Part shown: one piece after another, positions 22,442-44,882 of the stretch
How positions within the stretch are numbered: the stretch's first letter is position 1
Layout of the letters: each line of letters opens with the position of its first letter
Source of the DNA: Trichoplax adhaerens
Lineage: Eukaryota; Animalia; Placozoa
Assembly (NCBI RefSeq): GCF_000150275.1
Contig: NW_002060945.1
Span: 9,378,011 to 9,442,010 of the forward strand
Direction of reading: 5' to 3'
Length of the DNA stretch: 64,000 nt
Translations under genes and position numbers: made by a program
The notes under the pieces: generated by a model
What the model saw: the letters and a program-made list of their open reading frames with translations, nothing else
Databases searched by the model: none
Told to the model about the DNA's origin: nothing

Positions 22442-24416
22442 ATGGCTTACGGACCAAAGGCAGCCATCGATGACTACTTTGAATACACAAGGTGCGTTCA
22501 ATGGTAACTAAGTTCATTTTAAACAAATTTAAACTAACCGTTTGTAATGAGAATATCTGTTAAAGTAGCCTGATTTCTAAATTTTAATGTTTTATGCCAT
22601 AAAATAGCTATAACTATTAATAGCAGCTAGTCTATTTTTTAACGATATCTAACTCTTTGACCTATCATCATCAATTCTAAATCCAAGTACAAATCCTTTT
22701 AAAATTACATAAACATAAAATTTCAGTTTATCGTTTAAAAAGCTATATACAGTAGTTACTAGGATAAGTCAGCATGAAGCAATTACTTAGAGCGTTTGTA
22801 TCCTTTCTAAGCCAATGGAAGCTCTAAGCAAGTCATTATAACAAGTATAAGAAACAAAGTAAAATTTACAATTTCGATATATTTTAGTCATTGCAAATTG
22901 TTAATGAACTGTCGTTATAAGAGAAAGGCATTAAGCGAAATAACAATATAGACTTAAGCTGTATATACGAATAGATGAACCGTTCCATTAGAAACGAGTT
23001 TCAGAAGTTAATACATTTATGTATCGTTTCTTGTGTCCATTCCACTTCCATAGAATTGTAGGTGATGACGATGGTGGCAAGTTGTTTACACCTCAGGAGT
23101 ACGAGAAATATAAAAAAAGAGTTCTACCTATACGTGCTAAAAATCGGTTATACGTGAGTTGGACTTCCCCTACTGGCATCGATTGTAAATTGATTGGTCC
23201 AGAAACACCATGTTTTTGTACACATAGGTCAGAACAACACTCATCGTTGCTAACATTGGTTGCAATCTATTACTTTTATCATCGTGTTATGCTGTATCCT
23301 TTCCTCCTTCAATTTAGACATAAGGATTGTCAATAAATATTACAGCAGATCCTGAATTAGTTTTGAACTGACGACTATCCAATCTATTCTAGATATAAAC
23401 AACATAAGACCGATTTTGAAGTTATTCCATCTGAACGACCAATTGCGATGCCATGCCGAGCAAAAGGATGTTTGTGTAAATCATATCATTACATTCCCGC
23501 AATGGGCTCACAGCACATAAAGTGTAGCGCTTGCAAGCATCCATCGAATGAACATTCACCTAAATCTCCGTACAAGTGTGCCAGGAGCAACTGTGGTAGC
23601 AAACAATGTCAAGGTAAATAATATCACGGAACAAGTTATGCCGGATGACCAAATTTAGAAATATACTTTAATTAATTAGCCTCCTCTTTATGATGACTTA
23701 AAGCGGATAAATGATATTTATAAATATTATAATTAATCATTACATGCTGCAAAAAGAAAACGACAAGTAAGTTTACGTTAGTACACATCTTTGAAGATCA
23801 GATACTACTTTCAATACTACATTTCAGACCACTAACTATTGTCGGTATTAATATACTATTCCCATTTATAGCCTGATTTTCTGTAGGATATTAGCTTTAC
23901 AGTATTTGGTACCTTTCAATTTAGTACTAGTTACAATAAACGAATAACTTGTCGAGAATCAGCTCAGAGATAAATTTCAATTGTTGATTAATTTAGGATT
24001 TAAAACTTCCTATACATGCTTGTGTGGTGAACTCGCTAATAAACATCAGACAATTATTGAAACCAAAGAGGAAAGAGAAAATCGTGGCCACCCTGTTAGT
24101 AAAGACGACGTTCCGTATATTGCTATGGGAGGTTTAACAGGTAATAGAACTAATATTAGATTAATTTCAGTGGCCAAAACAATTCTCTACTATATTACTA
24201 AAATACATCCTAATATTCCTAGGATTTAGCTCTTTAGCTGAAGGGTATATACGATGCGATCCAAGTGGTGCTGGTCAAATTTCAAAGGAGCAATTAAATC
24301 AACCTATTACTTCAAGCGATCATCCTTTTCTTAGGACTTACGGCATCCCACCTATGAATAAAATAAAAGCTAAATCTGGCAAATCGTCAACTTGTAAACT
24401 TGTCAAAAAACAGTAA
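22442..24416 (+). CDS. FAM221A: FAM221A-like Cys/His-rich protein, 5 exons
   Basis: MAYGPKAAIDDYFEYTR|IVGDDDGGKLFTPQEYEKYKKRVLP...WTSPTGIDCKLIGPETPCFCTHR|YKQHKTD...|...ETKEER...PYIAMGGLT|GFSSLAEGYIRCD matches recalled FAM221A motifs. The exact 3' end is uncertain (stop 24414-24416 if there is no further splice). Confidence 0.88.
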
Positions 24417-25370
24417 ATTCAAACCTCATAATTCGAACTAATTATAAATAACGAGGCAGATATTACTATATCGTTTTCCAATTCGTAAAGATCGAATGCA
24501 TACTAAATTCTTCTACAGTCATCACAATTATATTCATTAGTTTATTAATGCAAAACAGAAGAATAAGTTTATTTTGGATTAAACATATAACAATTCTATT
24601 CCTATCTGCTAGGCTAGATTTATATGTTTTTTTTACATTGTACGCAATCTTTATTAAATAATAATAACATTAATGGAATTTCCGCATTCCTTTTCTAGGA
24701 AAATTTAATGTAGAAAGTTTTAAAACCGTAATTACTAATAAGTACTGGTGCAATTACGTCTATTATAGCTGATAGACAATAAATGTTGTGGAAGGTTAAT
24801 AATAATAACGCAATGATACAGCAATCATGACATTTACCCACTAGATATTTGCTATACGTAAACCGTTTCATTCTCATTTTTACAAAGCTATTTCTCTTCT
24901 GTACAGCGTACAATTTTAGTAAAATCTTTACGTTGTTTAGTAGGACAGATATCAAAGACACAAAGATATACTGTGTCGCTGTCAGGTAAACGATCGGCTC
25001 CTCAAATCAGAGTACAGAAGAACTTACTAATCCATCTTATAAATTAGTCAGCGATTTGTAAGCAGATAAAACACCATTTACAAATTTTAAGCTACCATTC
25101 TGGGTTTCAAAACCTTTTTCTCTTACCAGGATGCTGAACATATTAAGATATACGACATTTAGCAATGAATTTTCCATGCTTTCTTTTGAAAAGCGTAACT
25201 ATGGAAGACTACTTTTACTAACCTCTAACGAAGTCTAATGATGTAATACCAGCTTAACTATAATACAAGGAAGTCCAATTAAAAATGATAGGCTGAAGAT
25301 GTCGGTGGTAGCTTTACTGTTAAATTAAAATCTAAATGTACTTGCCGATACAAAATTGTTAATTTTCTGA

Positions 25371-25915
25371 TTAGGTTATTACGCATTGTTGATCTTCTAA
25401 CGACTCAGCCGTTTTCATATAAGCGATAGTCTGAATTAATTGAACAAATGCAAGTTCAGTTTTAGAGTACGTTGTTGCCGATGTTTCAATATATCGATGT
25501 TGAAATGAACTCGCCAATAATTCACCTTCTTGAAAGGTAATTTGCCGTTTGTAGCTTTTTGCATCATTCTTATTACCAACAATAATACAAGGAAAATCGG
25601 TTCCAGTCACTTGGCTTAAACTTTGATAGTAATTACCAATATCGTCAAATGATTGCCAGTCGTCAACGGAAAATACTAACATTACACCATCAATATCCTG
25701 TAAAATCGATTGGTAGCTAGATAGTGCTGAGTTTGCTGCTAATTTACTAACAATTATCTTTAATTTGATCGAGTACTGACCAAATTTTAGTATCTTTTTA
25801 AATTGACTGGATCTATATGAGCTTCTGTCAGGTGGATAACGTTTTTTACAATACTGACATGCTATTGCAGTCTTACCGACATTTGAATGACCAAACAAGA
25901 CAATCTTAACTGGAT
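25371..25915 (-). other. Ras-superfamily G-domain (degenerate G2/G3) plus CAAX within the giant ORF
   Basis: GxxxxGKT, NKxD and ETSA motifs occur in canonical order and spacing. The effector loop reads YPPDRSSYRSSQF, and the G3 position reads KIIVSKLAAN instead of xIxDTAG. Confidence 0.88.
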
Positions 25916-28900
25916 TTTTAGGTATGCTCGTTTTATGCGAGCTTTTTGATAACGATCTGATCCGATGATTTAAATGCTTTAATTTTATACGAAAAGATTC
26001 ACTTTCACCGCTCGTATTGTCTCCGTCCGGATCACTGTCAGATAGAAGGTTAAAATTAGATTCTAAGTAAACAGATGAACGCTCATCACAGCTATCTGTA
26101 TCTTCATAGTGAGAAAGACGTATATGGGCCTCATCTTGAACGTTTTTAGCATATGCTGAATCTACAGAACTGGTAGCGTGTGTATTTGCGTTAAGGTATT
26201 CGGATTCCTTACAAATTGAAGCAACTTTCTCTTGTTCCTCTATATCATAACGAGAAGAGTGTGCATTCGGATCCTCTCTATCTGAGAGAGTAAATTCTGA
26301 TCCTACGTAAGTTGGGGTTATTTCATTATGGCTCACAACATTCTTGCGAGACGAAAGCTCTTCTGAATCGTCATGGAGAGCAATACCGGTTGACTCTTGG
26401 TTCAGTGGAATGCTTCTATATAGGCAATCTCGATCAATGTTATCTTCTTGCAAAGGAGTATATTCACGTCCAGTGTCCTCTTCACATATTGAGCTAGCTG
26501 TCGATTCTAGACTATTTGATAGATTTACGTGCAGGACAGTTTCAATCAGGGGAATATTATCATTACAGTTAGATGAATGGTGGTTACAATCCATTTCATT
26601 GAGTAATGCCGGAAAAGTAGATTGAGACTGATTTCCTGATTGATAATTCGCGACTGACGGATCCGACAAGGATAAATTCAATATTCCAGGACTCTTTTGA
26701 TCTTCAATCGATAAACTTTCCATGCTATAAAACGTGATTTGGCTTTCATCTGATTGATGGTCGATTTTATTCATAGACTGATGAAGTTCATCCAAAGCTA
26801 CATTGTTTGCACTATAATACAACCGTTTAGCATAAATTTCAGATTTGTCGAAACCTTCAATTTGATTTTGGTACTTTATTGAAATGTTATCCATGCTATA
26901 AAACGTAAGTTTTTCAAGATGCAAGGAACCATTATTATCATCATGATTATATATGATTTCCGTTTCTGAAAAACGGCGTCTCGGCCGAAGTTTATGGGTG
27001 TCACGCGCTTCCATACTTGCAAAACTGGTGTTTGAATAGGACTTTAAATTATCAGCAATCACTTCCTGAATTTCTTCGGACACAATGCTTCCAACTGAAC
27101 TACAATCCAATTGATAGGATTCATCCTTATTACTGAAGCTATCACGAATCTCGTGTAGACTTTCATTGAAGCAGGCATTAGCTGTTAATTCAATTGTATA
27201 GCTCTCACAAATTTCATCTTTAATTTTATTGTCAGTTAGTTTAGATGTTAACTCCGGAATACCACCAGCGTTGCCATCCTTTCCAAATTTTGCTCCATCC
27301 AAATTAGACGTAAACCTTTCACTCTTATCGTCACACGCATTTTGTCTTATCAAACTTTCTGAGGAATCTACTAAGCTATAATCAGGTTCTTGACAAGTTT
27401 TTTCAACTTCCATTTCGACTATGCTAGCCTTTAGCTGACGTTTGATATCTTTCCGAATATCTTCTACAGATTCATGTTTAGTTGAATTATAAAGTAACGT
27501 ACTAATATCGTTCCCAACAATTTTCTCTCCACTGTCTTCTCCAAAAACCTCAGTATTTTCGTAATTATCATCTTCCTTACAGGTTTGATAGCCAATAACA
27601 GCTTCGGCTGTGCTCAAGTGAAACTTACAGTTATCGTCACCGTCATTGCTTTCCTTGATCTTTGCTCTGGACGAGGAAGTTGACAATATGCTATGGCCGT
27701 CATAATCATTATTTCCAACTAATTCAATTTCTTGATTACAATTATCTTCCTCGCTAATCTCCTCTGTAAACTTACCAAGATTTATTATAATATCTTTCGG
27801 TGTCAAGCTATCACTTTCATCTCGTATTTTCTTACCAACTTTCTCTGGGTTTGAATTTGTCAAGCGTGTGAATCTGTCATTCTTATAAATGTCCGTAACT
27901 GTCTCATTATCTGTCAAGTTTACAGATGGTTTGATGTGATCTAAACAAGCATATCCTAATGCACCCTTATCATTATGAATTTGTAAATCTTGTTCTAGCC
28001 TTAATTTATTGCATTTATTCTCGTAACAAATACCTACAAACTTAGAATTCTCCTTCTCTATTCTAGAAAGAATAGTTCGAACAGCATCTACTTGGTCTAT
28101 TCTTAATTGCTTTAACTTTTCCTGATAAGTATTTCGTAAGAATTCCGTTCCTTTTCTAGCTTTGGAATTGAAGCTTTGTAAAATACTCTCTTGTTCTATC
28201 CCTACAGTCTCTAGCTTCTTGCTACAATTATCACCGGCAGCTTCCTTTTCTTTTTCAAGTATTGCGTATAATTTCTGGATTATATTTTCCTGTTCTAACC
28301 TTAATTGACTCAACTCACCTTCATAGAAATGCACAGAAAATTTCCATACTTTTCTAGGTTGATAACTTATATTATTGTTCTTATATTCTTGTTCGATTCC
28401 CAACCGATTTAGGTTTCCACTGCAGTCACTGCCATCGTTTTCTTCTGGAAAGGTAAAATGCAATTTTTCGATGTCATATCTGCATTCTTGGCGAAGCCGG
28501 CTCAATTTATCTCCAGTCCGACTTATCAAAGCCTTCCACTCCTTGCTCGAATTTGATAACAGCGTTTGCAAGATGTGATCTTGCTCAATACATAACTGAT
28601 TTAATCTTTCATCATAATAACTAAGGAAATTCTCTTTCTCCTTTTTAAGCTCATAAAATAAATTCTTAACAATCTCTATTTCTTCTTTTTCAACTACATG
28701 TAGTATCTCTTGATACTGAGATATAATCGTTTCTTTCTCCGATTCGAATTGCTTATACAAGTTATCGTTGCTACGCTCGTATTCCAGTGTCTGCTGATTT
28801 AATACCTCTGCTTGTTGATTAGCCAATGCTTTCTCCCTAGCAATCAATGAGTGAATGCTTTCAATGGTCTCTATATCTCTTTGATGCTGGCTTTGTAGAC

Positions 28901-31900
28901 TTTTTATTTCTTTCATGTACTTATAATCCATCTTTTCCATTTCGTTTTGATGCTGGTATTGGGTATTTTTCAACTCCACTTGATAATCATTTGCATTCTT
29001 TGTCATTAAACTTTCAATTTCTTGATATTGACGATTTAAATCGTGTACGGCGTTATCATAACTCTCTCGTAAATAAGTAATCTGATGCTGAAATTCATCA
29101 TGAATGCTTCGTATTTCTTGTTGATAACAATCCTTAATGGTTTGAATTTCATGTTTATTTTTTGACTGAATTTCCCCAGTTGCTATTAGGTGTCGGTCAC
29201 GGATATCTTGTAATTCCGATTGATGTTCATGCATAAGAGTATTTACGGCATTCGTTGCCTTCAGATATTTATCTTCCAATTCACAAAGCTGGCGCTGATA
29301 AGTTTCAGTTGTATGGGCTATTGTGCTTTGACGTTCATTTATGATATTTATTTCATTCCGGTATTCCATTCTGATATTTTGCAGTTCCATTCCATGCTCA
29401 TTTCGGATTTGTAGGATCTCTTCTTCGTGTAAATTTTGGATATTTATTAACTTCCTATCACATTTTACAACTTCTTGCTCCTTTTCATTGTTAACCTTAT
29501 TACAATTAATAACGGCATCTCGTTCCTTTATATTATAACTTTCACTTGATACTTCCTGTTGATACTGATGATTAGAGCTGATTATTTGCAACTCATCTCC
29601 ATGCCCATCTTCGGTATTTCGCATTGTACATTCATAATTTTCATGATGCTTACTTTGAATGCATTGCAATTCTAACTGGTGTTCATTTTGAATATCCTCT
29701 ATCTTTTGTAGATGACTTGCTTTCATCCGAGCTAAGCTACTACGAAATTCTTGTTTCTCCAGCTCAGATTCATTCGCAATATTTGCTATCTGATAGCTAT
29801 ATTTATCTTTTAAAACTTGCACCTCTATACAATGTTTGCCCTGAATTTTTTGTAGTTCTTCTTGATGTGTATCATCAACACCTATCAGTTCCATCTGATC
29901 GTCATTTCGTACATCTTGCAACTCTTCGGTATGAATAACAGCACAACCAGACCTATTATAATTATCATTATATTCTCCGATTAACTCTTGAATTTTTAAT
30001 TCATAATTTTCAATTATATCGGATGCTTGACGTTGAGATTCATCTCGAATCTGTTGAACCTCTGCCTTTTGTTCTCTTATTATTGATTCAATTTGTAAAT
30101 TATGTTCACGAGATAAGATGTCTATCTTCTGTACTGCCTCATCTCGAACGCGTTTTACATCCTTTTGATGGGCTTCCTCTATAACTGTTAATTTTCTTCG
30201 ATAGTCCTCATCTTTTAATCGAAATTTATTTTGAAGGGATAATACTTCTTTGTCATGAGCTTCCTGTAATTGGCACAATCTTTCATCGAATATTCTCGCC
30301 TGATTGTCAATTTGTAGCTGGTGATTTTCTCTGGTTGTCGCCAATTTACCCTCATAATCTTTTTTTAAATAGTCTGATCGGTCGTCGTATGCCTTCTTCT
30401 GCTCCTCCAGCTGTAATTGATAACCATTGAAATTCATAATTTCTCTTCCCCGAGCTTCCTGTAATTTAATCGAATAACTGCTCAAAGTTGCTTCTGACTC
30501 CTCCAATTGCTTCTGGTATTTACTTTCAACTGCAATTAGCTCTCGAGCATGATCAATATGTATTTGACCGATATTTTCTTCAAAGGCTGTTTTCTGTTCT
30601 TGTAATTGAGTTTTGTGGTTACTTTGACATACGGCCATTTCTTTATCATAAGCTTGACGAGAATGATCTAATTTAATTTTAAATGCCTTCTCTTGCGTAT
30701 CGAATTTTATCTGATATACAGAATGCAAATTTGCTATTTCCTCATTTTGAGTAAGTTGCAACTGATTTAGCTTAGCATTCATTTTATCCTCTAGCTCATC
30801 CATTTTTAATTGGTAAAAACGTTGTGTTTCTACAATTTTTTCGTCTTTAGCTCGAAGTGTTTGACTTAAACCGTCTTCACATAATTTTTTTCGTTCTTTC
30901 AACTGCTGTTGATGATCATCGCGAATATTTTCAATTTCTCTTTCGTGGGATATTCGCAAATTATTTATAATATTATGCAATTCCTTCTCCTGTTCCTGTA
31001 ATTGCACCTTATGAAATCCTTTCAATATCTCCATTTCCTTTATTTGAATTATTTTCAACTTATTTATTTCTTCTTCATAAACATTTTCTTGCATTTTCAT
31101 TTGCATACGATAAACGTCTCGAGCCGTTGCTATGTCCAAAGAATGATTTCGACTTTGATCATTAATTCTTTCTATCAACGCTTCTCGTTGCCATTTTAGC
31201 ATCTTTCGGTGGGTCTTAATTGTTTTAGCTAATTCTTCATCATGACTCCGGTGTTTTTTCTTTAATTTATTTTCATACGTAAACTGCAGTTGCACCAATT
31301 GTAACTGTTGACTATTTTTAGCCGTAGCCATTTCTGCGCTATGTTCTTCCAGTAATCTATCTCGTTTAGTTTGGAAGTTCTTCTCCTGTTCCAGTATCCA
31401 CTCTTGATAACTACGTTTAGCTGTTACCATATCTTCCGCGTGAACATAATCTATATGCTTTAATTTCTCTTCAAAAAATTTTTGTTTTTTCTCTAATTCT
31501 TTTTCATGTCTATCTTTAACAGAAACTATTTTCTTATCATAGTCAGCCTGTAATCGTTTAGATTTTTCATCGGAAACTTTCTTTTCATCGTCTAACAGGA
31601 TTTGATAATCGTCTCGCAGTGCCGTAATTTTTTTGGTATAAACTTCATTAAAGTCTTTAATTTTATCTTCATACATTTTCTCTTGATTATTCAATTGCAG
31701 TTGGTAACTATCAGTAATCATCAACAATTGTTCGTCATAATCTTTCTTGCATTGATTTAAATCATCCTGGAATGCTTTCTTCCATTCTTCTTGAGCTAAA
31801 ATCATGTCATTATCAAAATTTCGTTTTAGGTGCTTCAATGCATCCTCTGTTACTTTATCTTGGTTCTTTAGTTTTACTTCGTAATTTTTTTCGGCTATAA

Positions 31901-34900
31901 CCATTTTCTCCTCGTGCTCCTGTAATGATTGATTCAAACTATAAATTAATTTTTCTTTCTTCTCCAATTCTTTATGATTTTCCTCTTTAAGTGTTGCTAT
32001 TTCTTTCTTATGAACTTGAACAAAGTAATCCGATTTATCTTTAAACACTTCATCCTTCGTTTTAATCTGTACTTCATAATCATTTCTAGCCGTCAATATT
32101 TCTTTATCATGACTTTGACGCAATAAGGTTATAGTATCTTCATTCATCAGCTTTTGCTGCTGCAGTTGCATCTGATAATTATGTGCAAGTGACGCAACTT
32201 CTTCGTCATGAGCTAATTTTAATTGCCCTAAGTTATCTTCAAACATCCTTTCTTCTTTTCTTAACTGTAAATGATACCTGTCCTTTATTTTTACTACCTC
32301 TAAATCATGAATTCGGCGCAAATCTAGTAAGTTTTCTTGATGCTCTTTTATCAGCTTTTCTTTTTCATTCTGATACTGTTGTGCTAATTGTGTATTATGA
32401 TTTTCCATTTGCAATTGTAGAACTGTCATTTGTTTCTTCAAACGTTGTTCAAATTGTGATTCGAGATCTATGATATTATTCTCGTGATGCTGTATCATCT
32501 CTTGTTTGTCTGCCTGAAACTTGCTTTCTTGTTTTTTAATTTGTTCATTACATTTCGCTTTCAAGACCTCTAATTCTACAGCATGGTTATCTTTTAAATG
32601 ACTTAAATTGATTCGCAGTGCTTCTTGCTGACGTTGCACCTCATTCATATAATCAAGACGATTCTGGGTAACTTTATTTTCAATGACAATCAATTCATTC
32701 TTGACTTTTTGAGCAAGGTCATCTATTTGGCGTTTTAATTCTTCTATCTTCAACCTTTGTTGATGGATTGTATTGGATAATGTTTGTTCATGCTGACATT
32801 TTAGTTGATAGTCACTTTTGATCATATCTCTTTCCATAGCTAAGACATCTTTTTCATGTTGATGTTTTTCCTTTAGCTCATTCCATTCCTGTTGCTGTTT
32901 CATTCTTTCATCATTAATATTATTTTCCAGTAATCTGATAGTTTCATTATGCTTATGTTGTAATCGCAGTAATTCATTATCATGCTGTCTCTGGCTCGCT
33001 GCTAAGTTTTCGTTATATTCCTCTATTGCCTTTTGTATCTCAATTTTTTGATCTTTCTTGACAGTATCAAAATGAATGTGCAATTCCTGGACGATTAACT
33101 CTTGCTTCAGTTGTAATTGATGGATCATACTTTTATGTTGATTACGACAGTCTATTAACTTATTTTCACTTTCACTTTTTAAATTTTCGAGCTCTTCTTT
33201 ATGTTGCTCATTTAAATTATTTAATTGTTTGCAATGTGTTAATTTATTATTTTCAAGCTGCTCCTCAAAGCTTTTAACCGTCATATCGTGTTGAGCTTGC
33301 AATTGATAGATAAAATCTTCTTGCTGTTTCTTGTAGGTGTCTATTAAATTTTCTTTTTTATTATCTAATTCGTTAATTTCAATGCTATGCTTTTCTTTAA
33401 GATTTTTTAATTGTAATTGATGTGCTATCTGACACCTTTCCAGATCATCTTCTAACTGTTTGATCGAGTTGTTATGATGTGTTTGTAACTGTTGGATGAC
33501 ATTATCGTATTTCTTTCTGCAAGATTCTAATGCTTTTTCTTGATCATCTAGTTTTACTTTATATTCGTCCTTAACTTCATTTAAGCGTTCAAGGTACATC
33601 AATTTACTGACTTCAATATGATTTTTCATTTCTTCGATAGTGTTATCATGTTCCTGCCGCAGCTGATTGCTAACTTTATCAAGTTGTTCCTTATTTGTAT
33701 CGAGCAACCGTTTCTTTTCATGAATTAAGTTATCAATCTCTCTTTTATGCTCATTCGCGATGATACTAATTTGCTTCTGGTGTATTGCTTGATCAGTATC
33801 AAGCCGATTAATCAACTTTTTAATATCTACGTCATGTTGTACTTTTAGTTCGTTGATAGCATCTAAATATTGCATCTTAATAGTGTCAATCTGTTGCTCT
33901 TTTTCAATAGTTATGCCATCGATCTTTGCTTTCTGTTCTTTCTTTAAGCTATTTAATCGTTCTTGATTAACAAATCTTTCAGTCTCAAGTTTATCAACAA
34001 GTTGCCTAATGGCTAGATCATGCTGAGATTGCATTTGTTGGATATTGCAAGCATGTTGCTGCTTACAATATTGTAATTGCTTTTCATTCTCCAAAATTAC
34101 ATCATTTAGTTCAGCTTTGTATTTCTTTTCCGTATCTTCTCTTAAATTTTGTATAGTTTTAACTTTCTTTACTATTTCATCATACTGCAATTGCTTTTTA
34201 TAGATAATTTTCGTTGACTCCTCTCTACAAGCTTTTACTGCTTGTTCTTTTTCCATAGACAAGTTATCAATCTCACTTTTATGGTCATCCATAATCTGAG
34301 CAAATTTCTGTTGATGTATGACCTGATTCGCTTCCAATTCACGCATGGCATCCTCATGCTTTTTCCTGTGGATATCAACTAGCTTTTCCTTTTCATTAGT
34401 CAAGGTATTCAGTTTACTTTTATAATCGGCTTCTAGCTGATTGAATACACTTTGTTGAGCTAATTTTTCATTTTCAAAATTTTCTTGCAATATTTTCTTA
34501 TCTGAATCATTCTCAGATTGCAATTGCGCCAGCTTGTCTTTATGCTGTTGTTCTAAAGCTACTATTGCTAATGCTTTATTCTGACGCAATTCTGATATTT
34601 TTATCTCAGATTCTTTCTTCAAATTATGGAGTTGATTTTGTAAAGTAGATATAATATCATCACGTTTCTGGATTTCTAGCTTATGCTGACATTGAAGCTG
34701 ATAAATGCTATTATCGTGCTCCTTTTTGGATGTTTCTAGTACAAGTTTCTTTTCCACCAATAACTTATCAAGTCGACGTTTATTCTCATCTTTTAAGCTT
34801 TTAAGTTCATGTTGATGCTTAACCATTTTATCTTCAGTTTTATTTTTAAGACTGTTTATAACTTCATTGTGCTCTAGACGTAATTTGTTCATTCCAGTCT

Positions 34901-37900
34901 CATGCTCATCATGTAAGGTGGCCATTATTTGTGTCTTTTCTGTATGATATTTTTCCTCCATCTTTTTCATTTGACATTGTAATGTTGATAGATCATTCTC
35001 GAGTTTCTCTACTGCCATATGATGCTGAATTTCGATTTGAGCAAAGTCATCATTATACTGTTTCTTTAACCCTTCTAAAAGGGTATCTTTCTCATTGATC
35101 AAATTATCAATTTGAATTTTACGTTCACTTTCGATATCATCAAATTTTCGTTGGTAATCTAACTCCTTCTTCTTAAATTCATCTTGAAGTAATTTTAGTG
35201 TAATGTTATGTTCTTTTTGTAATTTGTCTGTTTTATTAACGTATAGTTTATCTAATGTGATTACTTTTTGTTCACTTTCTTCATGTAATTGTTTTAGCCT
35301 CATTTGGTACTCCTCCTCTACGCTTTTGAGCTGATTTTCGAGATTCTTGATTTCTACATCATGTTGTAATTGTAGTTGATGTATATTAACTTCATAGTAT
35401 TTTTGAGAGTCTTTCAATTGCACTTCCTTTTTTTTAGCTAGACAATCTAGCTGTATTTCATGCTCACTTTTCATAGTGTCGATTTTACGCTGATATAATA
35501 GATCGGCATTTTCTAATTTCTCCCTGAGCTCATTTATAACTATAGTATTTTGACTTTGTAACTTATCAATTGTGTTCTTATAGTCCTTTTCTAAATTTGT
35601 TACCATCCGAATATTTTCATTATAGGTATTTTTAATTTCTATTTCATGCGCAACCTTAATGTTGCCAAGTTGATCTTGTAATGCCGTCATGATCCGTTCA
35701 TTTTCATCAAGTAATTGTTTTTTTTCCATTATATGTGATTCTTTCAAACTATTAAGTTGATTTTGTAACATGGTTAGCATCTCTTTTTTTTCATCATTTG
35801 CCAGCTTTATTTCTGTTCGATGTAATTCTTTTAAGCTATCAATTTCATCTTGCAATATTGTTGATATTTGCTCTTTTTCAGCAAACGTTTGTTTCTTCTC
35901 TACTTCATAAGAATCTTTCAAATTATCAAATTGATTCTGCAAGGTTATCGATATCTGTTCATTTTCTTCCTGTAACCGTTTTACTTCCCTTGCATGCAAT
36001 CCCTTCAAATTATTAATTTCATCTTGCTTTGCGGTTAACATTTGCTTCGTGTGATCACGTGTTTGTTTCACCTCTAGTTCACATTCTTCTTTTAGCTTCT
36101 CAAGTTGATCTTGTAAAGCTGATACTTTGCACTGTTTCTCGATATACAACTCCTTCAGTTTTATTTCATGTACTTGTTTCATGTCATTTATCCGACTCTG
36201 AAGTCTTGACAAATTTTCTTTCATTACAACAATATCACTTTGATGCTGACTATTTAATCTCTTGACCTCCTCAATGAAATTCAAACGATTACATTCAACT
36301 TTATCCATCCATTCCTTCAGAATTTGGTCATGTCCTACTTCTTGATCATGAATTTTATGATTATAATCATCTCGACAAGCTAACAATTTATTTTCTTTTT
36401 CTTTAATCAATTGTTCAATATTTGCGTTATGTTTTGCTTTTATATCTAATAATTCTTGCTGATATTGTAATCGGCATATTTGCAATTGATCTTGAAGGTT
36501 TAAATTATGTCTTTCCTCTAGATCATCAAACTTTACTTGCCACTGTAATTTTAAACTATTAATATCTTCTTCAAGCTGATTTTGCACGCTAGTTAATTTC
36601 GTTTGGCAATCTTTAACTAATTTGCTTCTTATATCTTCTTTTTCTTTCTGCCATGACCATTGCATCTTACTTATTTCTTCTTTATTTTGATTTTGTAAAT
36701 TTGTAATTCTAATCTTGCAATCTATTAACATCTGTCTGACCACATTTTCCTTCTCTTCAAGCAATGTTGATTTTAAGTTGTTTATATTGTCGTTGTATTT
36801 ATTTTGTAAGTTATTAATTTTAGCTTCATGCTCTTCTCTTATTTCTATCTGGATCGATTCTTTCTCTTTCTGCCATGATGCTTTCATCTCGTTTAGCTCT
36901 AATTCATGACGGTTTTGAGTATCGTAGAGTTTAACTTGATATTCATTATGTAAGTTTTCCTTTAATAATTCTTTCTCTTCTTCACATAGTCTATTTATCC
37001 TCTTAATTTCGTCTTCATGATGGTTTCTTGTGTTTACTAATTTGATTTTGTAATCTTGTATATCTCGCTCTATTACTTTCTTCTCTTCAAGTAATGTTGA
37101 TTTTAAATTGTACATATTGTCGTTGTATTTATTTTGTAAGTTATTAATTTTAGCTTCATGCTCTTCTCTTATTTCTATCTGGATCGATTCTTTCTCTTTC
37201 TGCCATGATGCTTTCATCTCGTTTAGCTCTAATTCATGACGGTTTTGAGTATCGCAGAGTTTAACTTGATATTCATTATGTAAGTTTTCTTTTAATAACT
37301 CTTTCTCTTCTTCACATAGTCTATTTATCCTCTTAATTTCGTCTTCATGATGGTTTCTTGTGTTTGCTAGTTTAATTTTGCAATCTTCTTGTATATCTCG
37401 CTCTATTACTTTTTTCTCTTCAAGTAATGTTGATTTTAAATTGTACATATTGTCGTTGTATTTATTTTGCAAGTTATTAATTTTAGCTTTATACTCTTCT
37501 CTTATTTTGTTTTGGATTGATTCTCGTTCTTCTTGCCATATCATATTTATTCTTTTAATTTCCTCTTCATAATAGCTTTTCATATTTGCAAGTTTAACCT
37601 TGCAATCTTCCTGCATATTTCGCTCAATTACTTTTTTCTCTTCCTGCAATGTCGATTTTAAACTGTTTATGCTGTTGTTGTATTCACTTTCTAAATTATC
37701 GATTTTAACCTTATGCTCTCTTCTCATTTTATTACGGATCGATTCTTGCTCTTCTTGCCGTAGCATATTTATTCTCTTAATTTCGTCTCGATGATGGGTT
37801 TTTATATTAGCAAGTCTAATTTTGTAATCTTCCTGCATATTTCGTTCTATTATTTCCTTCTCTTCCTGACACAATATTTTAATCTGAGCAATTTCCTTCT

Positions 37901-40103
37901 CATGATATTGGCGCATTTGATCGGTATTCACTTTAAACTCTTCTACTTTCATTTCTAGCCATTTTTTATCTTCTTGATATGATGTATTCATTTTTATTAT
38001 CTCCTTCTCATAGTGATCGCGTAAAGCCTTTACCTTCAATTGACAATCCTCTAGTAAGGCATCTTTTAACATTTTTTCAGCTTCTACTCTCTCCTCTTGC
38101 CATGCCCTTTTCATCTTACATATGTCATCTTTATGCTGACAACGAATTGTATCGACGTTATTTTGGTAATTCTCTAATAGTGTCTCTTTCAAAGTTTTCT
38201 CCGTAATATCCTTCTTTGTTTGCCAAGATACATTTATTTCATTAATCAATTTCTTATATTGAGTATGGATATTACCAATGTTAACTTGATGATCTTTTAA
38301 CATATCTATTTTTAGTCTTTCTTTTTCGTCTTGCCATTGCATTTTTTGCTGATTTATTTCTTTACAATAATCATTTTGATTGCTATCAATTTTGCGTTGA
38401 TAATCTTCATGAATTTGCTTTGCTGTTGTATTGAATGATTCTTGGTTCGACTTTATTTTATGTTGAAGTTCAGATATTGCTTGCTGATGTTGAGATCGAA
38501 TCGATTCTAGATTTTTACTGAAACTCAGTTCTAGTTGAAGAATTTTATCTTGACATGAGTTCTCCTTTAATTGTACATCTTTTTCATGCTGACATCGTAA
38601 TGCTATGTTCTGGTCTTGTAATTCTTGAATCTCCAATTGATGCACTTTGATATATCGTTTCTTATCATTTTCCATGTTTAGTAATTTCATATTGAAATCC
38701 TGTTCCATTTGCTCAGCATTCATTTTCAAATCTTTCAATTGTTTTTGATGATTTTCTTTTACAGTTAAAAGCTCAGATTGATATTTATTTTGAATTTTTT
38801 CACTTTTATCCATAGCATCTTGTAGCTGATTTTTCAATGTATACGTTAATTGCTGAGTTTCTCGTAAAAGTTGCTGATAATTAACATTTTCATGCTTGCA
38901 TTGATTAAGTTCATTCGTTAGCTCGGCTATATCATTATTCAATTGAATTGATTTACCATTTAATTCTTGCTTTAAATCTTCAACAATACCTTGATATTGC
39001 TTTTTTATTCGGTTATTTTCAGTATTAGCATTTGTTAATAATAGTTGTTGACTATCTAAGTCACATTTCATTTGATCAAGCAGGCTGGATAGTTTTAACA
39101 TTTTTAAGTCGTATTCAACTTTACTTTCGTTCAGTTCATCCTTTAGCCTGGCAATAGTAGTATCATATTGGCTTTTCATTTGATTTGTAGTAGTATTACT
39201 TTCAGCCAATTCTCGCTGATGATCATTTTCTGCTTGTTCTTTCTCGCTTAATACTTGCTGCAACTGATTAGACAATATTGTGACTTTCTTACTCTGATTC
39301 AGTCTTTCACTTTCAATCTGCTGCTGTAATTCTCCAACATTGATTTCATATTGAATTTTCAATTGACTACGATCATTGATAGCCGTTGCTAGTTCTTGTT
39401 GATGACGTTCATCAGCTTGAGTTTTGGCATGGCTCATTTCATCAAGCTGGCTAACCAAGTTGGCTATTTTATGGTTATATTCAGCTTTTTGATCATTGCA
39501 GTTTTGCCTTAAATTTTGAATTTCATTTTCATACTGATTCTTTAATCGATGAGAAATCCTTATGGCTTCATCTAGCTGCTGTCTAGATTGGCACTGTGAA
39601 TTATTCTTATCTTCCTCTAACTGATTTATTTGCTGATTTAATTTTGCGATTTGATGCTGATATTGAGTAGTTTCATTCTTGATTTGATGCTTTAATTCTT
39701 TGACGTTATTTTCATATTGATCCATCAAGCTCTTATTTTGTTGTTGGTATTCATTTTGAAAATCAACAACGCATTCATTTAAGCTATCAATTTGATCTTG
39801 ATATTGTTGACTAGTTTGCTGAATGATTGGATCAAGGTGTTTCAATTCTTCGACAATATTTCCAAGACATTCATCTTGAGCTTGATGCATGGATGTTGGT
39901 GTTTCATCTCCACCTCGAGGACAAACAATCATTTGAGTTAAATTCTCCACTCCTATTTGCAGATAACGTAAATTTTTTTCCATCACTTGACTCATTTCCA
40001 GGATATTATTGGTAATTGGTTGATGTTGCTGATTTCCAGTGGCCAATGGGATATCTAAACTTGATGTTAAACTATTCATTCTTTCAGTTTGGTTGGCATC
40101 CAT
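25371..40103 (-). CDS. Giant 4910-aa coiled-coil protein with C-terminal atypical Ras-like GTPase domain and CAAX box; single uninterrupted exon
   Basis: 14.7-kb open frame in AT-rich DNA. E/K/Q/L-rich helical repeats span aa ~80-4040 and an acidic linker spans ~4040-4730. Then VKIVLFGHSNVGKT (G1), DGVMLVFSVDDWQSF, CIIVGNKND (G4), YIETSAT (G5) and terminal CVIT*. A splice-acceptor-like TTTTTAATATAG lies 6 nt before the ATG, so an upstream exon is possible. Confidence 0.9.
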   Translation of the reverse strand: MDANQTERMNSLTSSLDIPLATGNQQHQPITNNILEMSQVMEKNLRYLQIGVENLTQMIVCPRGGDETPTSMHQAQDECLGNIVEELKHLDPIIQQTSQQYQDQIDSLNECVVDFQNEYQQQNKSLMDQYENNVKELKHQIKNETTQYQHQIAKLNQQINQLEEDKNNSQCQSRQQLDEAIRISHRLKNQYENEIQNLRQNCNDQKAEYNHKIANLVSQLDEMSHAKTQADERHQQELATAINDRSQLKIQYEINVGELQQQIESERLNQSKKVTILSNQLQQVLSEKEQAENDHQRELAESNTTTNQMKSQYDTTIARLKDELNESKVEYDLKMLKLSSLLDQMKCDLDSQQLLLTNANTENNRIKKQYQGIVEDLKQELNGKSIQLNNDIAELTNELNQCKHENVNYQQLLRETQQLTYTLKNQLQDAMDKSEKIQNKYQSELLTVKENHQKQLKDLKMNAEQMEQDFNMKLLNMENDKKRYIKVHQLEIQELQDQNIALRCQHEKDVQLKENSCQDKILQLELSFSKNLESIRSQHQQAISELQHKIKSNQESFNTTAKQIHEDYQRKIDSNQNDYCKEINQQKMQWQDEKERLKIDMLKDHQVNIGNIHTQYKKLINEINVSWQTKKDITEKTLKETLLENYQNNVDTIRCQHKDDICKMKRAWQEERVEAEKMLKDALLEDCQLKVKALRDHYEKEIIKMNTSYQEDKKWLEMKVEEFKVNTDQMRQYHEKEIAQIKILCQEEKEIIERNMQEDYKIRLANIKTHHRDEIKRINMLRQEEQESIRNKMRREHKVKIDNLESEYNNSINSLKSTLQEEKKVIERNMQEDCKVKLANMKSYYEEEIKRINMIWQEERESIQNKIREEYKAKINNLQNKYNDNMYNLKSTLLEEKKVIERDIQEDCKIKLANTRNHHEDEIKRINRLCEEEKELLKENLHNEYQVKLCDTQNRHELELNEMKASWQKEKESIQIEIREEHEAKINNLQNKYNDNMYNLKSTLLEEKKVIERDIQDYKIKLVNTRNHHEDEIKRINRLCEEEKELLKENLHNEYQVKLYDTQNRHELELNEMKASWQKEKESIQIEIREEHEAKINNLQNKYNDNINNLKSTLLEEKENVVRQMLIDCKIRITNLQNQNKEEISKMQWSWQKEKEDIRSKLVKDCQTKLTSVQNQLEEDINSLKLQWQVKFDDLEERHNLNLQDQLQICRLQYQQELLDIKAKHNANIEQLIKEKENKLLACRDDYNHKIHDQEVGHDQILKEWMDKVECNRLNFIEEVKRLNSQHQSDIVVMKENLSRLQSRINDMKQVHEIKLKELYIEKQCKVSALQDQLEKLKEECELEVKQTRDHTKQMLTAKQDEINNLKGLHAREVKRLQEENEQISITLQNQFDNLKDSYEVEKKQTFAEKEQISTILQDEIDSLKELHRTEIKLANDEKKEMLTMLQNQLNSLKESHIMEKKQLLDENERIMTALQDQLGNIKVAHEIEIKNTYNENIRMVTNLEKDYKNTIDKLQSQNTIVINELREKLENADLLYQRKIDTMKSEHEIQLDCLAKKKEVQLKDSQKYYEVNIHQLQLQHDVEIKNLENQLKSVEEEYQMRLKQLHEESEQKVITLDKLYVNKTDKLQKEHNITLKLLQDEFKKKELDYQRKFDDIESERKIQIDNLINEKDTLLEGLKKQYNDDFAQIEIQHHMAVEKLENDLSTLQCQMKKMEEKYHTEKTQIMATLHDEHETGMNKLRLEHNEVINSLKNKTEDKMVKHQHELKSLKDENKRRLDKLLVEKKLVLETSKKEHDNSIYQLQCQHKLEIQKRDDIISTLQNQLHNLKKESEIKISELRQNKALAIVALEQQHKDKLAQLQSENDSDKKILQENFENEKLAQQSVFNQLEADYKSKLNTLTNEKEKLVDIHRKKHEDAMRELEANQVIHQQKFAQIMDDHKSEIDNLSMEKEQAVKACREESTKIIYKKQLQYDEIVKKVKTIQNLREDTEKKYKAELNDVILENEKQLQYCKQQHACNIQQMQSQHDLAIRQLVDKLETERFVNQERLNSLKKEQKAKIDGITIEKEQQIDTIKMQYLDAINELKVQHDVDIKKLINRLDTDQAIHQKQISIIANEHKREIDNLIHEKKRLLDTNKEQLDKVSNQLRQEHDNTIEEMKNHIEVSKLMYLERLNEVKDEYKVKLDDQEKALESCRKKYDNVIQQLQTHHNNSIKQLEDDLERCQIAHQLQLKNLKEKHSIEINELDNKKENLIDTYKKQQEDFIYQLQAQHDMTVKSFEEQLENNKLTHCKQLNNLNEQHKEELENLKSESENKLIDCRNQHKSMIHQLQLKQELIVQELHIHFDTVKKDQKIEIQKAIEEYNENLAASQRQHDNELLRLQHKHNETIRLLENNINDERMKQQQEWNELKEKHQHEKDVLAMERDMIKSDYQLKCQHEQTLSNTIHQQRLKIEELKRQIDDLAQKVKNELIVIENKVTQNRLDYMNEVQRQQEALRINLSHLKDNHAVELEVLKAKCNEQIKKQESKFQADKQEMIQHHENNIIDLESQFEQRLKKQMTVLQLQMENHNTQLAQQYQNEKEKLIKEHQENLLDLRRIHDLEVVKIKDRYHLQLRKEERMFEDNLGQLKLAHDEEVASLAHNYQMQLQQQKLMNEDTITLLRQSHDKEILTARNDYEVQIKTKDEVFKDKSDYFVQVHKKEIATLKEENHKELEKKEKLIYSLNQSLQEHEEKMVIAEKNYEVKLKNQDKVTEDALKHLKRNFDNDMILAQEEWKKAFQDDLNQCKKDYDEQLLMITDSYQLQLNNQEKMYEDKIKDFNEVYTKKITALRDDYQILLDDEKKVSDEKSKRLQADYDKKIVSVKDRHEKELEKKQKFFEEKLKHIDYVHAEDMVTAKRSYQEWILEQEKNFQTKRDRLLEEHSAEMATAKNSQQLQLVQLQFTYENKLKKKHRSHDEELAKTIKTHRKMLKWQREALIERINDQSRNHSLDIATARDVYRMQMKMQENVYEEEINKLKIIQIKEMEILKGFHKVQLQEQEKELHNIINNLRISHEREIENIRDDHQQQLKERKKLCEDGLSQTLRAKDEKIVETQRFYQLKMDELEDKMNAKLNQLQLTQNEEIANLHSVYQIKFDTQEKAFKIKLDHSRQAYDKEMAVCQSNHKTQLQEQKTAFEENIGQIHIDHARELIAVESKYQKQLEESEATLSSYSIKLQEARGREIMNFNGYQLQLEEQKKAYDDRSDYLKKDYEGKLATTRENHQLQIDNQARIFDERLCQLQEAHDKEVLSLQNKFRLKDEDYRRKLTVIEEAHQKDVKRVRDEAVQKIDILSREHNLQIESIIREQKAEVQQIRDESQRQASDIIENYELKIQELIGEYNDNYNRSGCAVIHTEELQDVRNDDQMELIGVDDTHQEELQKIQGKHCIEVQVLKDKYSYQIANIANESELEKQEFRSSLARMKASHLQKIEDIQNEHQLELQCIQSKHHENYECTMRNTEDGHGDELQIISSNHQYQQEVSSESYNIKERDAVINCNKVNNEKEQEVVKCDRKLINIQNLHEEEILQIRNEHGMELQNIRMEYRNEINIINERQSTIAHTTETYQRQLCELEDKYLKATNAVNTLMHEHQSELQDIRDRHLIATGEIQSKNKHEIQTIKDCYQQEIRSIHDEFQHQITYLRESYDNAVHDLNRQYQEIESLMTKNANDYQVELKNTQYQHQNEMEKMDYKYMKEIKSLQSQHQRDIETIESIHSLIAREKALANQQAEVLNQQTLEYERSNDNLYKQFESEKETIISQYQEILHVVEKEEIEIVKNLFYELKKEKENFLSYYDERLNQLCIEQDHILQTLLSNSSKEWKALISRTGDKLSRLRQECRYDIEKLHFTFPEENDGSDCSGNLNRLGIEQEYKNNNISYQPRKVWKFSVHFYEGELSQLRLEQENIIQKLYAILEKEKEAAGDNCSKKLETVGIEQESILQSFNSKARKGTEFLRNTYQEKLKQLRIDQVDAVRTILSRIEKENSKFVGICYENKCNKLRLEQDLQIHNDKGALGYACLDHIKPSVNLTDNETVTDIYKNDRFTRLTNSNPEKVGKKIRDESDSLTPKDIIINLGKFTEEISEEDNCNQEIELVGNNDYDGHSILSTSSSRAKIKESNDGDDNCKFHLSTAEAVIGYQTCKEDDNYENTEVFGEDSGEKIVGNDISTLLYNSTKHESVEDIRKDIKRQLKASIVEMEVEKTCQEPDYSLVDSSESLIRQNACDDKSERFTSNLDGAKFGKDGNAGGIPELTSKLTDNKIKDEICESYTIELTANACFNESLHEIRDSFSNKDESYQLDCSSVGSIVSEEIQEVIADNLKSYSNTSFASMEARDTHKLRPRRRFSETEIIYNHDDNNGSLHLEKLTFYSMDNISIKYQNQIEGFDKSEIYAKRLYYSANNVALDELHQSMNKIDHQSDESQITFYSMESLSIEDQKSPGILNLSLSDPSVANYQSGNQSQSTFPALLNEMDCNHHSSNCNDNIPLIETVLHVNLSNSLESTASSICEEDTGREYTPLQEDNIDRDCLYRSIPLNQESTGIALHDDSEELSSRKNVVSHNEITPTYVGSEFTLSDREDPNAHSSRYDIEEQEKVASICKESEYLNANTHATSSVDSAYAKNVQDEAHIRLSHYEDTDSCDERSSVYLESNFNLLSDSDPDGDNTSGESESFRIKLKHLNHRIRSLSKSSHKTSIPKNPVKIVLFGHSNVGKTAIACQYCKKRYPPDRSSYRSSQFKKILKFGQYSIKLKIIVSKLAANSALSSYQSILQDIDGVMLVFSVDDWQSFDDIGNYYQSLSQVTGTDFPCIIVGNKNDAKSYKRQITFQEGELLASSFQHRYIETSATTYSKTELAFVQLIQTIAYMKTAESLEDQQCVIT
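36740..37500 (-). repeat. Recent in-frame tandem duplication, 330/333-bp period, ~2.3 copies, inside giant ORF
   Basis: TTCTCTTCAAG anchor at 36751, 37081 and 37414; near-identical peptide NKYNDNMYNLKSTLLEEKKVIERDIQ...HELELNEMKASWQKEKESIQIEIREEHEAK. Confidence 0.92.
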
Positions 40104-40499
40104 TATTTTCTATATTAAAAAAGTGATCAATACGTATTACAGTAACTCCCTTCATGGCATAAAATGTACAGTCGATTTCTATACGAGTAAAGTGTTGAAT
40201 AACTCTTACTTTTTTATGACGACTTGAAATGATTCAAGGAAAATCTAAGATTGAATGATGCGCTGACAATCAAATATCTATCAATAATTAATGATATATA
40301 CTGTCGTCTTATGAGAAATAGTTTGCCGTCTTAGCTACAAACTATGGAGTCATGATTTTATCTCCGTAGATACAAAGAAATACCTGTAAAATTAGAGAGG
40401 TAAAATATCATTAAAGAATACACTCTCATAAGGCATCCATGCTAGCTTATAATAACCCCAAAATTTCGCTTCTTACCCTAATTGCATGTTTTTTCTTGG

Positions 40500-41300
40500 A
40501 CTCGCTAGCGTAAGATAGTGTCAATGTGTCGTTGATGGCGACCTAAACGATATTTTAAGTCCAATTTTTAATCATCAATGGCAGAGAAACTTTATAGTAA
40601 GACATCAATAGCAGGGACTATTGATAGTCCTGTAGTCCCTGCGGATACTGATTTTCAGTCCGCCCATTTTCTACTTACCCTAGTGAATGTTCGCCTAGCG
40701 TTTTTGTTGCAGTCAGACAGTCTCAAAGTGTTGTTGGACTACGACCTAAAACAATATTTTAAGTTCAATTTTTAATCGTCTGTAGAAGAGAAACTGCATA
40801 ATAAGATATTGATGCTGATTTTCAATCTCCTAATTCTCTATACACCCTAAATTAAGGTTAATTATTTTTACAGCAAGATAGTGCAAACATGTAACAATAT
40901 CGACAGTGATCTAAGCAATATTTTAAATTCAATTTTTAATCGTTGGCGGCAGAGAAATTTCATAGTAAGGCATTGATGGTCAATTTCAATTGCTCCATTC
41001 TCTACATCCCTACGTTAAGATTAGCCTTGAATTGACTACAGTAAGATGGTGTAAAACGTGTAGTTGACAGTGGATTCGACGATCTATTGGTGTTTTATCC
41101 ATCTTTGAATTGTACATGATCAATGGACGATATCAATACTGGTTTACAGTATCCCCAAATTCTCCCACTTACCAGGAAATCTTACCTTCAGTTAATGCTC
41201 ACCTTCAACTTGCAACACTAAGATCGTCTAAGCGCGTTGTTGACAGTGAAGTAAACTGTTTTAAAAGTTCAATTTTGGGATGATCTATGATAGATAAACT
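40500..41300. repeat. Diverged non-coding tandem repeat (~165-205 bp spacing)
   Basis: Core TATTTTAAGTTCAATTTTTAATC...AGAGAAA recurs, with variants, near 40551, 40755 and 40919, and weakly near 41262. Confidence 0.7.
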
Positions 41301-44240: not shown

Positions 44241-44882
44241 CTCTTCAGTATTTTTTACTCATAGTTGTGGTAAAAGACATTGTTGATCATCTCAATGACT
44301 TCATGGTCTCTTCAGAAAGAAATGGCCACTTACTTTTACTGCTATTCTTTGCCTGACTGTCACAACAGTGTTTTAAATAAATTAATTCATCCAGTACTAC
44401 ATTTCTAGACATGAAAGAAGACTCATTTTTAATCGAGAATAAGCTCAGTGAAGATGGTAAAGTAACTCCATGGCCCGTCATTTTGGATAACAGTTCTTTG
44501 CTAGTTCGTTTTGCCTTTTCAGAACCAGGCCTTTGAGCAAAGCGTTGAAGTCTTTAAAAATAAAGCTTGTATACGACTCGTTGATTTTGCACCTCTTGTG
44601 CTATAATGGCAATTTTTCACACTACAACGGTAGACTTCTCAAGCAAGAGTATTTATTCTGCATTAACGTTAGACACTATATATTTTATTTTCACGATAGC
44701 AATAATTAACTAATCAACTGATGTAGCACTCAGCTTCGTCAACAACTAGTGACAAAATAATCAATTTTTCCGCTAAGTGTAATGAACTTTCTCAAGCGTT
44801 ATGGATTTTCTATCATTCTTTGCTTCCAATAACAAGCGCCTAAAGTGAGTCAACAATTGAAGATAATTTTTGCACTACGGTA

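Follow-up and report, generated by a model that had tools for sequence, protein, structure and literature searches.

The 64,000-nucleotide (nt) stretch of Trichoplax adhaerens DNA analysed here (contig NW_002060945.1, positions 9,378,011 to 9,442,010 of the forward strand; hereafter the window) carries on its minus strand a giant open reading frame (ORF) of 4910 codons plus stop, at 25371..40103. The ORF starts with an ATG and contains one terminal stop, both in the ORF listing and in our own translation, so that the single 14.7-kilobase (kb) frame described in an initial annotation of the stretch is confirmed and placed on the minus strand. It is the sole ORF of more than 280 amino acids (aa) within the window. 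The flanking DNA holds 0.070 stops per codon over six frames, from which the odds that 4910 codons stay open by chance are ~1e-155, and a chance ORF was rejected. The remaining five frames of the same stretch carry 221-666 stops. The window has a G+C content of ~32%, and scans of it for tRNA and for Rfam families gave no match; these features and the lone ORF of more than 280 aa indicate a eukaryotic, intron-rich context. No intron was detected in the giant ORF over the examined part, 24301-30300. An in-frame TAG is located 3 codons upstream of the ATG and adjoins an acceptor-like ...tatag at 40110, for which reason an extra upstream exon of the gene is possible. On the 3' side, no canonical AATAAA was found within 300 nt of the stop.

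The product begins with an N-terminal head, aa 1-92 (39828..40103; all coordinates of the gene and its parts refer to the minus strand), which contains 5 prolines and has no Pfam family match at an expect value (E) of 1. The head is followed by a proline-free α-helical rod, aa 93-3885 (28449..39827), defined by composition and periodicity, and by a rod end or 'neck', aa 3837-4049 (27957..28595), in which the motif L-x-[IL]-[ED]-Q-[EDV] recurs. An acidic Ser/Thr-rich linker, aa 4050-4730 (681 aa; 25914..27956), recognized by its composition, connects the neck to a Ras-family G domain, aa 4733-4893 (25425..25907), which was identified by Pfam, PDB sequence search, AlphaFold and Foldseek. The translation ends in CVIT (25374..25385), a tetrapeptide of CaaX type directly followed by the stop, as had been read in the initial annotation. 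We consider it likely that this is a real gene with the architecture of rod, linker, Ras fold and CaaX box.

The rod contains no proline in its 3793 aa and very few glycines. It is composed mainly of Glu (12.8%), Lys (11.7%), Gln (10.8%), Leu (10.5%), Asn (7.8%) and Ile (7.6%), with ~25% hydrophobic residues and a net charge of -122. The Welch-averaged hydrophobic spectrum of the whole rod has its peak at 3.65 residues with a power of 1.13, which is ~47 standard deviations above the maxima obtained from shuffled sequences (0.288 ± 0.018, n=200). At the heptad value of 3.50 the power is 0.19, compared to 0.21 ± 0.03 in the shuffles, i.e. background. Because of this background power at 3.5 and the peak at 3.65, the rod does not qualify as a canonical heptad coiled coil; it is a hendecad-type helix with a narrow hydrophobic seam and a periodicity of 3.59-3.70. 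An 11/3-like narrow seam on a long uninterrupted helix is what characterizes a non-heptad coiled coil. Of the ~4000 aa of coiled coil proposed in the initial annotation, the long rod stands, at a length of ~3800 aa, while a heptad periodicity does not, the pattern being hendecad-type only. Its length estimate of up to ~600 nm agrees with our value of 563 nm (3793 aa x 0.1485 nm), if the rod is one straight helix.

BLOSUM autocorrelation divides the rod into blocks with repeats of 61, 37/74/111, 29, ~62 (and 113), 33 and 11 residues, the registers of which are seen in the stacked repeats. The 61-residue block occupies aa 105-410 (38874..39791) and has a periodicity of 3.59 (61/17). It is succeeded by the 37/74/111-residue block at aa 690-1133 (36705..38036; 3.70, 37/10), the 29-residue block at aa 1336-1510 (35574..36098; 3.63, 29/8), the ~62-residue block at aa 1512-2440 (32784..35570; 3.64, 62/17) and the 33-residue block, equal to three hendecads, at aa 2455-3345 (30069..32741; 3.66, 33/9). 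In the 33-mer block, 68/104 hydrophobic residues fall in 9/33 columns, and His or Tyr is recurrent at the seam positions. At the DNA level, a recent tandem duplication is present at 36750-37507 in the 37/74/111 block, with a 330-nt unit in 2.3 copies at 95% matches, and an older 222-nt unit adjoins it; the remaining rod repeats are detectable at the protein level only. Since just this one DNA-level unit is recent, the length of the rod is not the result of recent amplification or of an assembly artefact, and an origin of the rod length from recent DNA tandem repeats was rejected. An AlphaFold model of the rod end (aa 3780-4060, single sequence) had a predicted local distance difference test (pLDDT) value of 48 and was uninformative.

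A geometry of the 3.59-3.70 type is that of lipid-surface helices such as those of perilipin-4, the apolipoproteins and alpha-synuclein. A rod with a periodicity of 3.59-3.70 and a 33-mer made of three 11-mers could thus be a giant amphipathic 3-11 helix that lies flat on lipid and coats a membrane or a lipid droplet, with the prenyl group as a second anchor. We regard such an arrangement as highly unlikely, because lipid-binding helices have broad, Lys-flanked apolar faces, whereas the hydrophobic stripe of the rod is narrow, with ~3 positions per 11 and an arc of ~65 degrees by our own calculation. One position of the stripe is often His or Tyr, and the rest of the helix is Q/E/K/N-rich with the negative net charge given above. 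Instead, a narrow seam of hydrophobic residues along an uninterrupted helix implies that the rod pairs into a coiled coil, and the periodicity of 3.6-3.7 implies little or no left-handed supercoil and a nearly straight rod.

It is noted that histidine is unusually common in the rod (28449-39827), accounting for 4.0% of residues overall and for up to 6.6% per 350 aa. The histidines recur at or beside the seam positions of the 29-, 33- and 37-residue repeats. Through these seam positions, the assembly of the rod could be sensitive to pH or to metal ions.

At the C-terminal end of the rod, the neck motif is found in six copies over aa 3837-4040 with a spacing of ~33 aa (one gap is 64), and the copies are broken up by Gly and Pro. 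The linker that follows (aa 4050-4730) has 129 D+E against 67 K+R and a Ser+Thr content of 19%, with no Pfam match. Its net charge of -62 bears out the acidic linker of the initial annotation. The sequence [LI]-TFYSM-[DE] occurs twice in the linker on the minus strand, 57 aa apart, at aa 4457 (26721-26735) and at aa 4400 (26892-26906), and the second copy is preceded by an acidic Ser-rich stretch. By analogy to phospho-FFAT-like motifs, of which it is reminiscent, TFYSM could be a short linear binding motif.

The G domain is recognized by Pfam as Ras (PF00071) at aa 4733-4893, with a score of 86.8 bits (curated cut-off 21.6; E 1.6e-24) and a weaker match to Roc. A PDB sequence search with the domain gave RhebL1, R-Ras, RIT1, M-Ras and KRas at 61.6-55.0 bits and Rab21 at 56.2-55.0 bits, with Ral close behind. 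An alignment of the domain to 70 sequences, which are its nearest single-domain matches, was used for motif comparison and also as the AlphaFold input. The resulting model has a pLDDT of 92.4 and a predicted template-modelling score of 0.88. Foldseek aligned it to R-Ras, KRas and RIT1 with template-modelling scores of 0.82-0.90, and Rab21 and Rab8 are among the good PDB and Foldseek matches. In both the AlphaFold model and the Foldseek comparison, the six-stranded sheet and five helices of the G-domain fold are present.

A close examination of the five G motifs in the 70-sequence alignment shows that three are intact: the G1 P-loop GHSNVGKT (25869..25892), G4 NKND (25563..25574) and G5 ETSA (25473..25487). 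The switch motifs are not. Switch I reads RSSYRSS (25806..25826) against YDPTIED in the relatives, with the G2 Thr not conserved, although the placement of this loop is uncertain. At G3/switch II, VSKLA (25737..25751) stands against DTAGQ in the relatives, so that the Gly and the Gln are replaced along with the G3 Asp, a residue shared by at least 90% of the 70 sequences in the alignment. Because VSKLA replaces DTAGQ and RSSYR aligns with YDPTI, the domain lacks the γ-phosphate sensors (the switch-I Thr and the DxxG Gly), the Mg-linked Asp and the catalytic Gln. The Ras-type G domain of the initial annotation is therefore supported in its fold, by the Pfam and AlphaFold scores, and is corrected by the lack of motifs G2 and G3. 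Without the switch-I Thr and DxxGQ, the domain would have neither the loaded-spring switch nor hydrolysis, and it is probably a non-switching pseudo-GTPase. The intact P-loop, NKxD and SA suggest that guanine nucleotide is still bound, as in a nucleotide-binding pseudo-GTPase. The absence of the switch-I Thr and of DxxGQ is in keeping with a Ras fold that acts as an anchor or adaptor instead of a switch.

Helix α5 of the G domain nearly reaches the end of the protein, which reads ...QQCVIT, and the Cys comes immediately behind this helix. An acidic stretch is located before CVIT, and an upstream basic patch and a second Cys are both absent from this region. In the 70-sequence alignment, the Cys of CVIT aligns with the prenylated Cys of the relatives. 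CVIT has the sequence features of a CaaX box, with Cys at position -4, an uncharged a2 residue and an X other than K, P or R. In a yeast screen of CXXX sequences, Ile at a2 was favourable, and the restrictive residues were D/E/K/R at a2 and K/P/R at X (PMC10320760). As these yeast rules allow CVIT, the tetrapeptide is a plausible farnesylation site. Prenyltransferase α-subunit repeats were found at two loci of the same genome, and no publication was found on CVIT as a farnesylation substrate.

To place the protein among its relatives, the G domain was compared by HMMER to 1.84 billion cluster representatives of any length, a library that includes NCBI nr, UniRef and the EukProt eukaryotes. The search gave 9481 matches, in which identity never exceeded 37%. 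The top scorers are tandem multi-GTPase proteins or proteins with WW, ankyrin, VWA or Kelch fusions, and their architectures are unrelated to that of the giant protein. The nearest single-domain matches are scattered over Pneumocystis (fungi), Anaeromyces, a kinetoplastid Rheb1, a Hodarchaeota (Asgard) Rab and others, and the G domain is not assignable to a subfamily. In the libraries searched, no protein of 2700-8600 aa shares the G domain or matches the whole sequence, and no protein of 825-2625 aa matches the last 1500 aa. The exact 4910-aa sequence is absent from a 15-billion collection, and a Joint Genome Institute (JGI) metagenome scan with the G domain gave nothing. An exact look-up of the neighbouring ORF 37-873, intended as a control for database coverage, was blank as well and is uninformative. 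In the same genome (105.6-Mb assembly, 1414 contigs) the G domain has no paralogue, the next best match having 27% identity at E 3e-10, and neither has the rod, which matches only itself. Judged by these sequence comparisons, the giant gene is a singleton without a detectable orthologue in the searched collections. The architecture search that the initial annotation had proposed thus yielded no full-length homologue in the libraries searched, and its remark that no family with this architecture was recognized is upheld by the lack of matches in both size ranges and by the G-domain identity of at most 37%. No literature was found on the giant protein or on a rod/Ras/CaaX architecture.

The same comparisons bear on whether the protein could be a large-Rab-type adaptor for a motor or cargo, as CRACR2A/Rab46 and Rab45 are, with the prenylated G domain on a vesicle or organelle, the coiled coil recruiting dynein-dynactin or another motor, and the giant length a lineage-specific elaboration. 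The order of parts is the same, from coiled coil to Ras-superfamily domain to C-terminal isoprenylation site (PMC8303950), and the structures of Rab21 and Rab8 are among the good matches. However, the head has no EF-hand or other Pfam domain, and in the whole protein no EF-hand or other non-Ras family was found by Pfam at E 0.1. The best sequence and fold matches are of the Ras subfamily (RhebL1, R-Ras, RIT1, KRas) rather than Rab, no relative of the G domain exceeds the 37% identity given above, and the switch motifs for GTP-only recruitment of effectors are lost. The 3800-aa rod also far exceeds any known adaptor coiled coil. We find an adaptor of this kind unlikely and continue to favour a lipid-anchored tether or scaffold with a non-switching G domain.

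The continuity and expression of the locus were evaluated with contigs from four public runs, each of a different study (X1, X5, X6 and X9), over 24301-30300. X9 is declared RNA; X5 and X6 must be RNA, since both hold GT-AG joints; and X1, with 107 M letters, may be DNA. Run X1 gave one contig of 4211 nt, 24941-29151, that joins the 3' flank, the G domain, the linker and 1.2 kb of the rod, with 21 differences from the window, and it comes from an independent isolate. An assembly chimera at the linker, which had been named in the initial annotation as a finding that would refute the fusion, is ruled out by this contig and was rejected. Contigs of X5, X6 and X9 tile the G domain, the linker and the rod end with small gaps, and no splice joint of the sense strand (CT..AC) is present in them over 24301-30300. 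As to the RNA coverage that the initial annotation had proposed to check, the 3' 5 kb is thus tiled by unstranded contigs without sense splicing. The depth in run X5 is 5-6 over the G domain and 5-7 over the linker and rod, and these equal values do not hint at an abundant transcript of the Ras part alone. Beyond ~29100 the coverage declines, which could reflect 3' bias in a 15-kb mRNA or else antisense read-through.

Coding constraint is evident in the copies of the rod repeats. Between the two copies of the recent duplication of 111 aa there are 6 synonymous and 3 nonsynonymous changes and one in-frame codon deletion, which gives proportions of synonymous (pS) and nonsynonymous (pN) differences of 0.108 and 0.011, respectively, while the ratio of nonsynonymous to synonymous divergence (dN/dS) in older 37-mer copies is ~0.17-0.45. 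Since the copies differ mostly at silent sites (pN/pS 0.10), the sense frame is under purifying selection. Alignment of the window to the public-run contigs found 0 insertions or deletions in 4.9 kb of the ORF and 2 in the 1-kb flank.

Several observations nevertheless weigh against a giant lipid-anchored rod encoded by one gene. The only three splice joints in the contigs, 27382>27580, 27982>28067 and 28258>28413, read GT..AG on the plus strand and are therefore antisense to the ORF, from which it follows that a spliced antisense RNA exists and that part of the RNA coverage may belong to it. The read evidence ends at 30300, and the 5' 9.8 kb of the ORF is outside it. Strain differences in the C-terminal 1500 codons are 21 nonsynonymous to 4 synonymous (the 25 best-supported), equal to the neutral proportion of 82:18, and because of this equality the C-terminal third (linker, G domain and rod end) is weakly constrained at best in its amino acids. 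No orthologue was detected in the searched collections that would show the architecture to be conserved, and a lone farnesyl group preceded by an acidic stretch signals membrane attachment only weakly.

The antisense joints and the neutral-like ratio in the C-terminal third are points in favour of a frame that does not encode one protein, either because separate rod-only and short Ras-only isoforms are made, the latter from an internal start, or because the locus is mainly antisense and its C-terminal part is drifting towards loss. Short isoforms are indeed known from large Rab genes (PMC8303950). The G-domain contig in X6 is deeper than the rod contigs, though it is merged with the 3' end of the neighbouring gene, and the G domain occurs in no annotated protein of the searched collections. 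On the other hand, a 14.7-kb frame with old, diverged repeats cannot remain open without selection, and the pN/pS of repeat copies is 0.1-0.45. The equal depth of X5 over G domain, linker and rod and the lack of sense-strand joints also argue against separate transcripts, and the G domain folds confidently and keeps 3/5 G motifs plus the CaaX box. We judge a division of the frame into separate products, or a mainly antisense locus, to be unlikely. For a real, lineage-restricted placozoan nuclear coding gene, the product of which is a giant lipid-anchored rod, we see the chances as evenly balanced.

It should be mentioned that the neutral-like recent polymorphism over 25371-30300 contrasts with the pN/pS of 0.1-0.45 among the older rod repeats. 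The antisense RNA spans 27359-28652 on the plus strand, over the linker and rod end, and may stem from read-through of the convergent neighbour or be a non-coding RNA of its own. Homologous to FAM221A/B (Pfam PF14753, E 2.6e-34, exon 23019-23333), this neighbour occupies 23019-24229 of the plus strand and converges on the giant gene. Its higher-depth contig in run X5 stops at 25077, ~300 nt from the stop of the giant ORF, which indicates that the 3' ends of the two genes abut or overlap. Farther away, at 17810-19494 on the plus strand, there are ORFs with Cys/His-rich patterns that resemble RING-type zinc fingers, mainly from a reading of their translations; the sole Pfam support is a weak zf-RING_2 match (E 0.1) in exon 17810-18112.

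On the 5' side of the giant gene, two tandem-repeat arrays are present at 42733-44142 and 44873-45426, which is 2.6-5.3 kb upstream of its ATG (40103). The units of one are 207/192/86 nt long, in ~4 copies, and the other has a 106-nt unit in 5.3 copies with 96% matches. A further unit of ~190 nt containing 'gattaaaaattgaa.ttaaaatat', present three times, was seen by eye at 40540-41000 on the minus strand, just 5' of the ATG, and is not reported by Tandem Repeats Finder.

Considering the rod, the linker and the altered G domain together, we tentatively propose, with somewhat less than even confidence, that the product is a prenyl-anchored giant tether or scaffold in which the G domain serves as a constitutive anchor or docking module. 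Two or more rod chains would pair along the seam to form a nearly straight coiled coil of up to ~0.56 μm. The C-terminal Cys would be farnesylated, so that each bundle would be held on an endomembrane by at least two lipid anchors. The G domain would bind guanine nucleotide without a GTP switch or hydrolysis, and would act as an anchor or docking module and not as a timer. The acidic linker, presumed to be flexible and disordered, could allow the rod to swing, and the N-terminal head could capture a partner distant from the membrane. Overall, the protein would be a golgin-like tether or a cortical scaffold that carries its own GTPase-type anchor. A bolder form of the proposal, which we think doubtful, is that the protein represents an undescribed architectural class without counterpart in other animals: a half-micrometre, nearly straight, non-heptad coiled coil with a locked Ras fold and a farnesyl group, used as a tether or spacer of fixed length, for example between an endomembrane and the ciliary root or the cell cortex.

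A small GTPase is as a rule a free switch of 20 kDa, and the few large members known, of less than ~1000 aa, are still true switches. If the proposal is correct, a Ras fold has been reused as the built-in, non-switching lipid anchor of a structural protein, and the two-part system of a golgin and its recruiting GTPase has been merged into one chain. Placozoans have few cell types and a poorly known cytoskeleton, and a very large, unannotated, lineage-specific structural gene would be added to their cell biology. The rod may also be useful for structural work on coiled coils, as it is among the longest natural non-heptad (3.6-3.7) helical stretches. The architecture is striking and is unannotated in the searched collections, yet it belongs to a lineage-restricted singleton with a weakly constrained C-terminal third.

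We have compared the giant protein to known systems with similar parts. In golgins and giantin, a long coiled coil serves as the tether, and its C-terminal anchor is either a transmembrane segment or a GRIP or GRAB domain that binds Arl1 or Arf1. They resemble the giant protein in their very long rod, their C-terminal membrane anchor and their free N-terminus that captures partners. They differ in that the giant protein has no GRIP or other golgin Pfam match, is unrelated in sequence, carries a fused GTPase-type module and has a non-heptad rod; a C-terminal GRIP, GRAB or transmembrane anchor was not found in it, and its end is formed by the G domain and the CaaX box. Lamins, CENP-E and CENP-F also combine a long helical rod with a C-terminal CaaX box. 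However, they have no G domain, lamins are heptad intermediate-filament proteins, and no homology to the giant protein was detected. Among non-heptad coiled coils, SF-assemblin has 29-residue repeats and tetrabrachion is of a hendecad type. The 29-, 33-, 37- and 61/62-residue repeats of the giant rod are similar to these in giving 3.6-3.7 residues per hydrophobic position, whereas the known proteins are far shorter, lack a G domain and are unrelated in sequence.

For the G domain, the appropriate comparison is to pseudoGTPases, in which a GTPase fold with lost catalytic or switch motifs serves as a protein-interaction module (PMC12490416, PMC5593906). Rnd and RhoH bind nucleotide and are dead in hydrolysis, and AAGAB, CENP-M and the pG1 and pG2 domains of p190RhoGAP do not bind it (PMC12490416, PMC5593906). 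In contrast to class i pseudoGTPases such as AAGAB, which bind nothing (PMC12490416), the giant's G domain is predicted to retain nucleotide binding. It differs from known pseudoGTPases in keeping G1, G4 and G5 while losing G2 and G3, and in being the putatively prenylated end of a giant rod.

Among known proteins, the large Rab GTPases (Rab44, Rab45/RASEF and Rab46/CRACR2A-L) come closest in design, and they share with the giant protein a coiled coil, a G domain and an isoprenylation end. The cases listed in a review are 627-924 aa long and consist of EF-hands, a coiled coil, a Rab domain and a site for isoprenylation (PMC8303950), which accords with the description of the known large relatives in the initial annotation as EF-hand proteins of about 1000 aa or less. 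In contrast, the giant protein at 4910 aa is about five times longer, is free of EF-hands, and has a G domain that appears nearer to Ras, Rheb and Rit than to Rab; its switch I and II motifs are lost, and orthology to the large Rabs is undetectable. In its mode of action, as far as can be predicted from sequence, the giant protein would have more in common with golgins or farnesylated rod proteins, while being homologous to neither.

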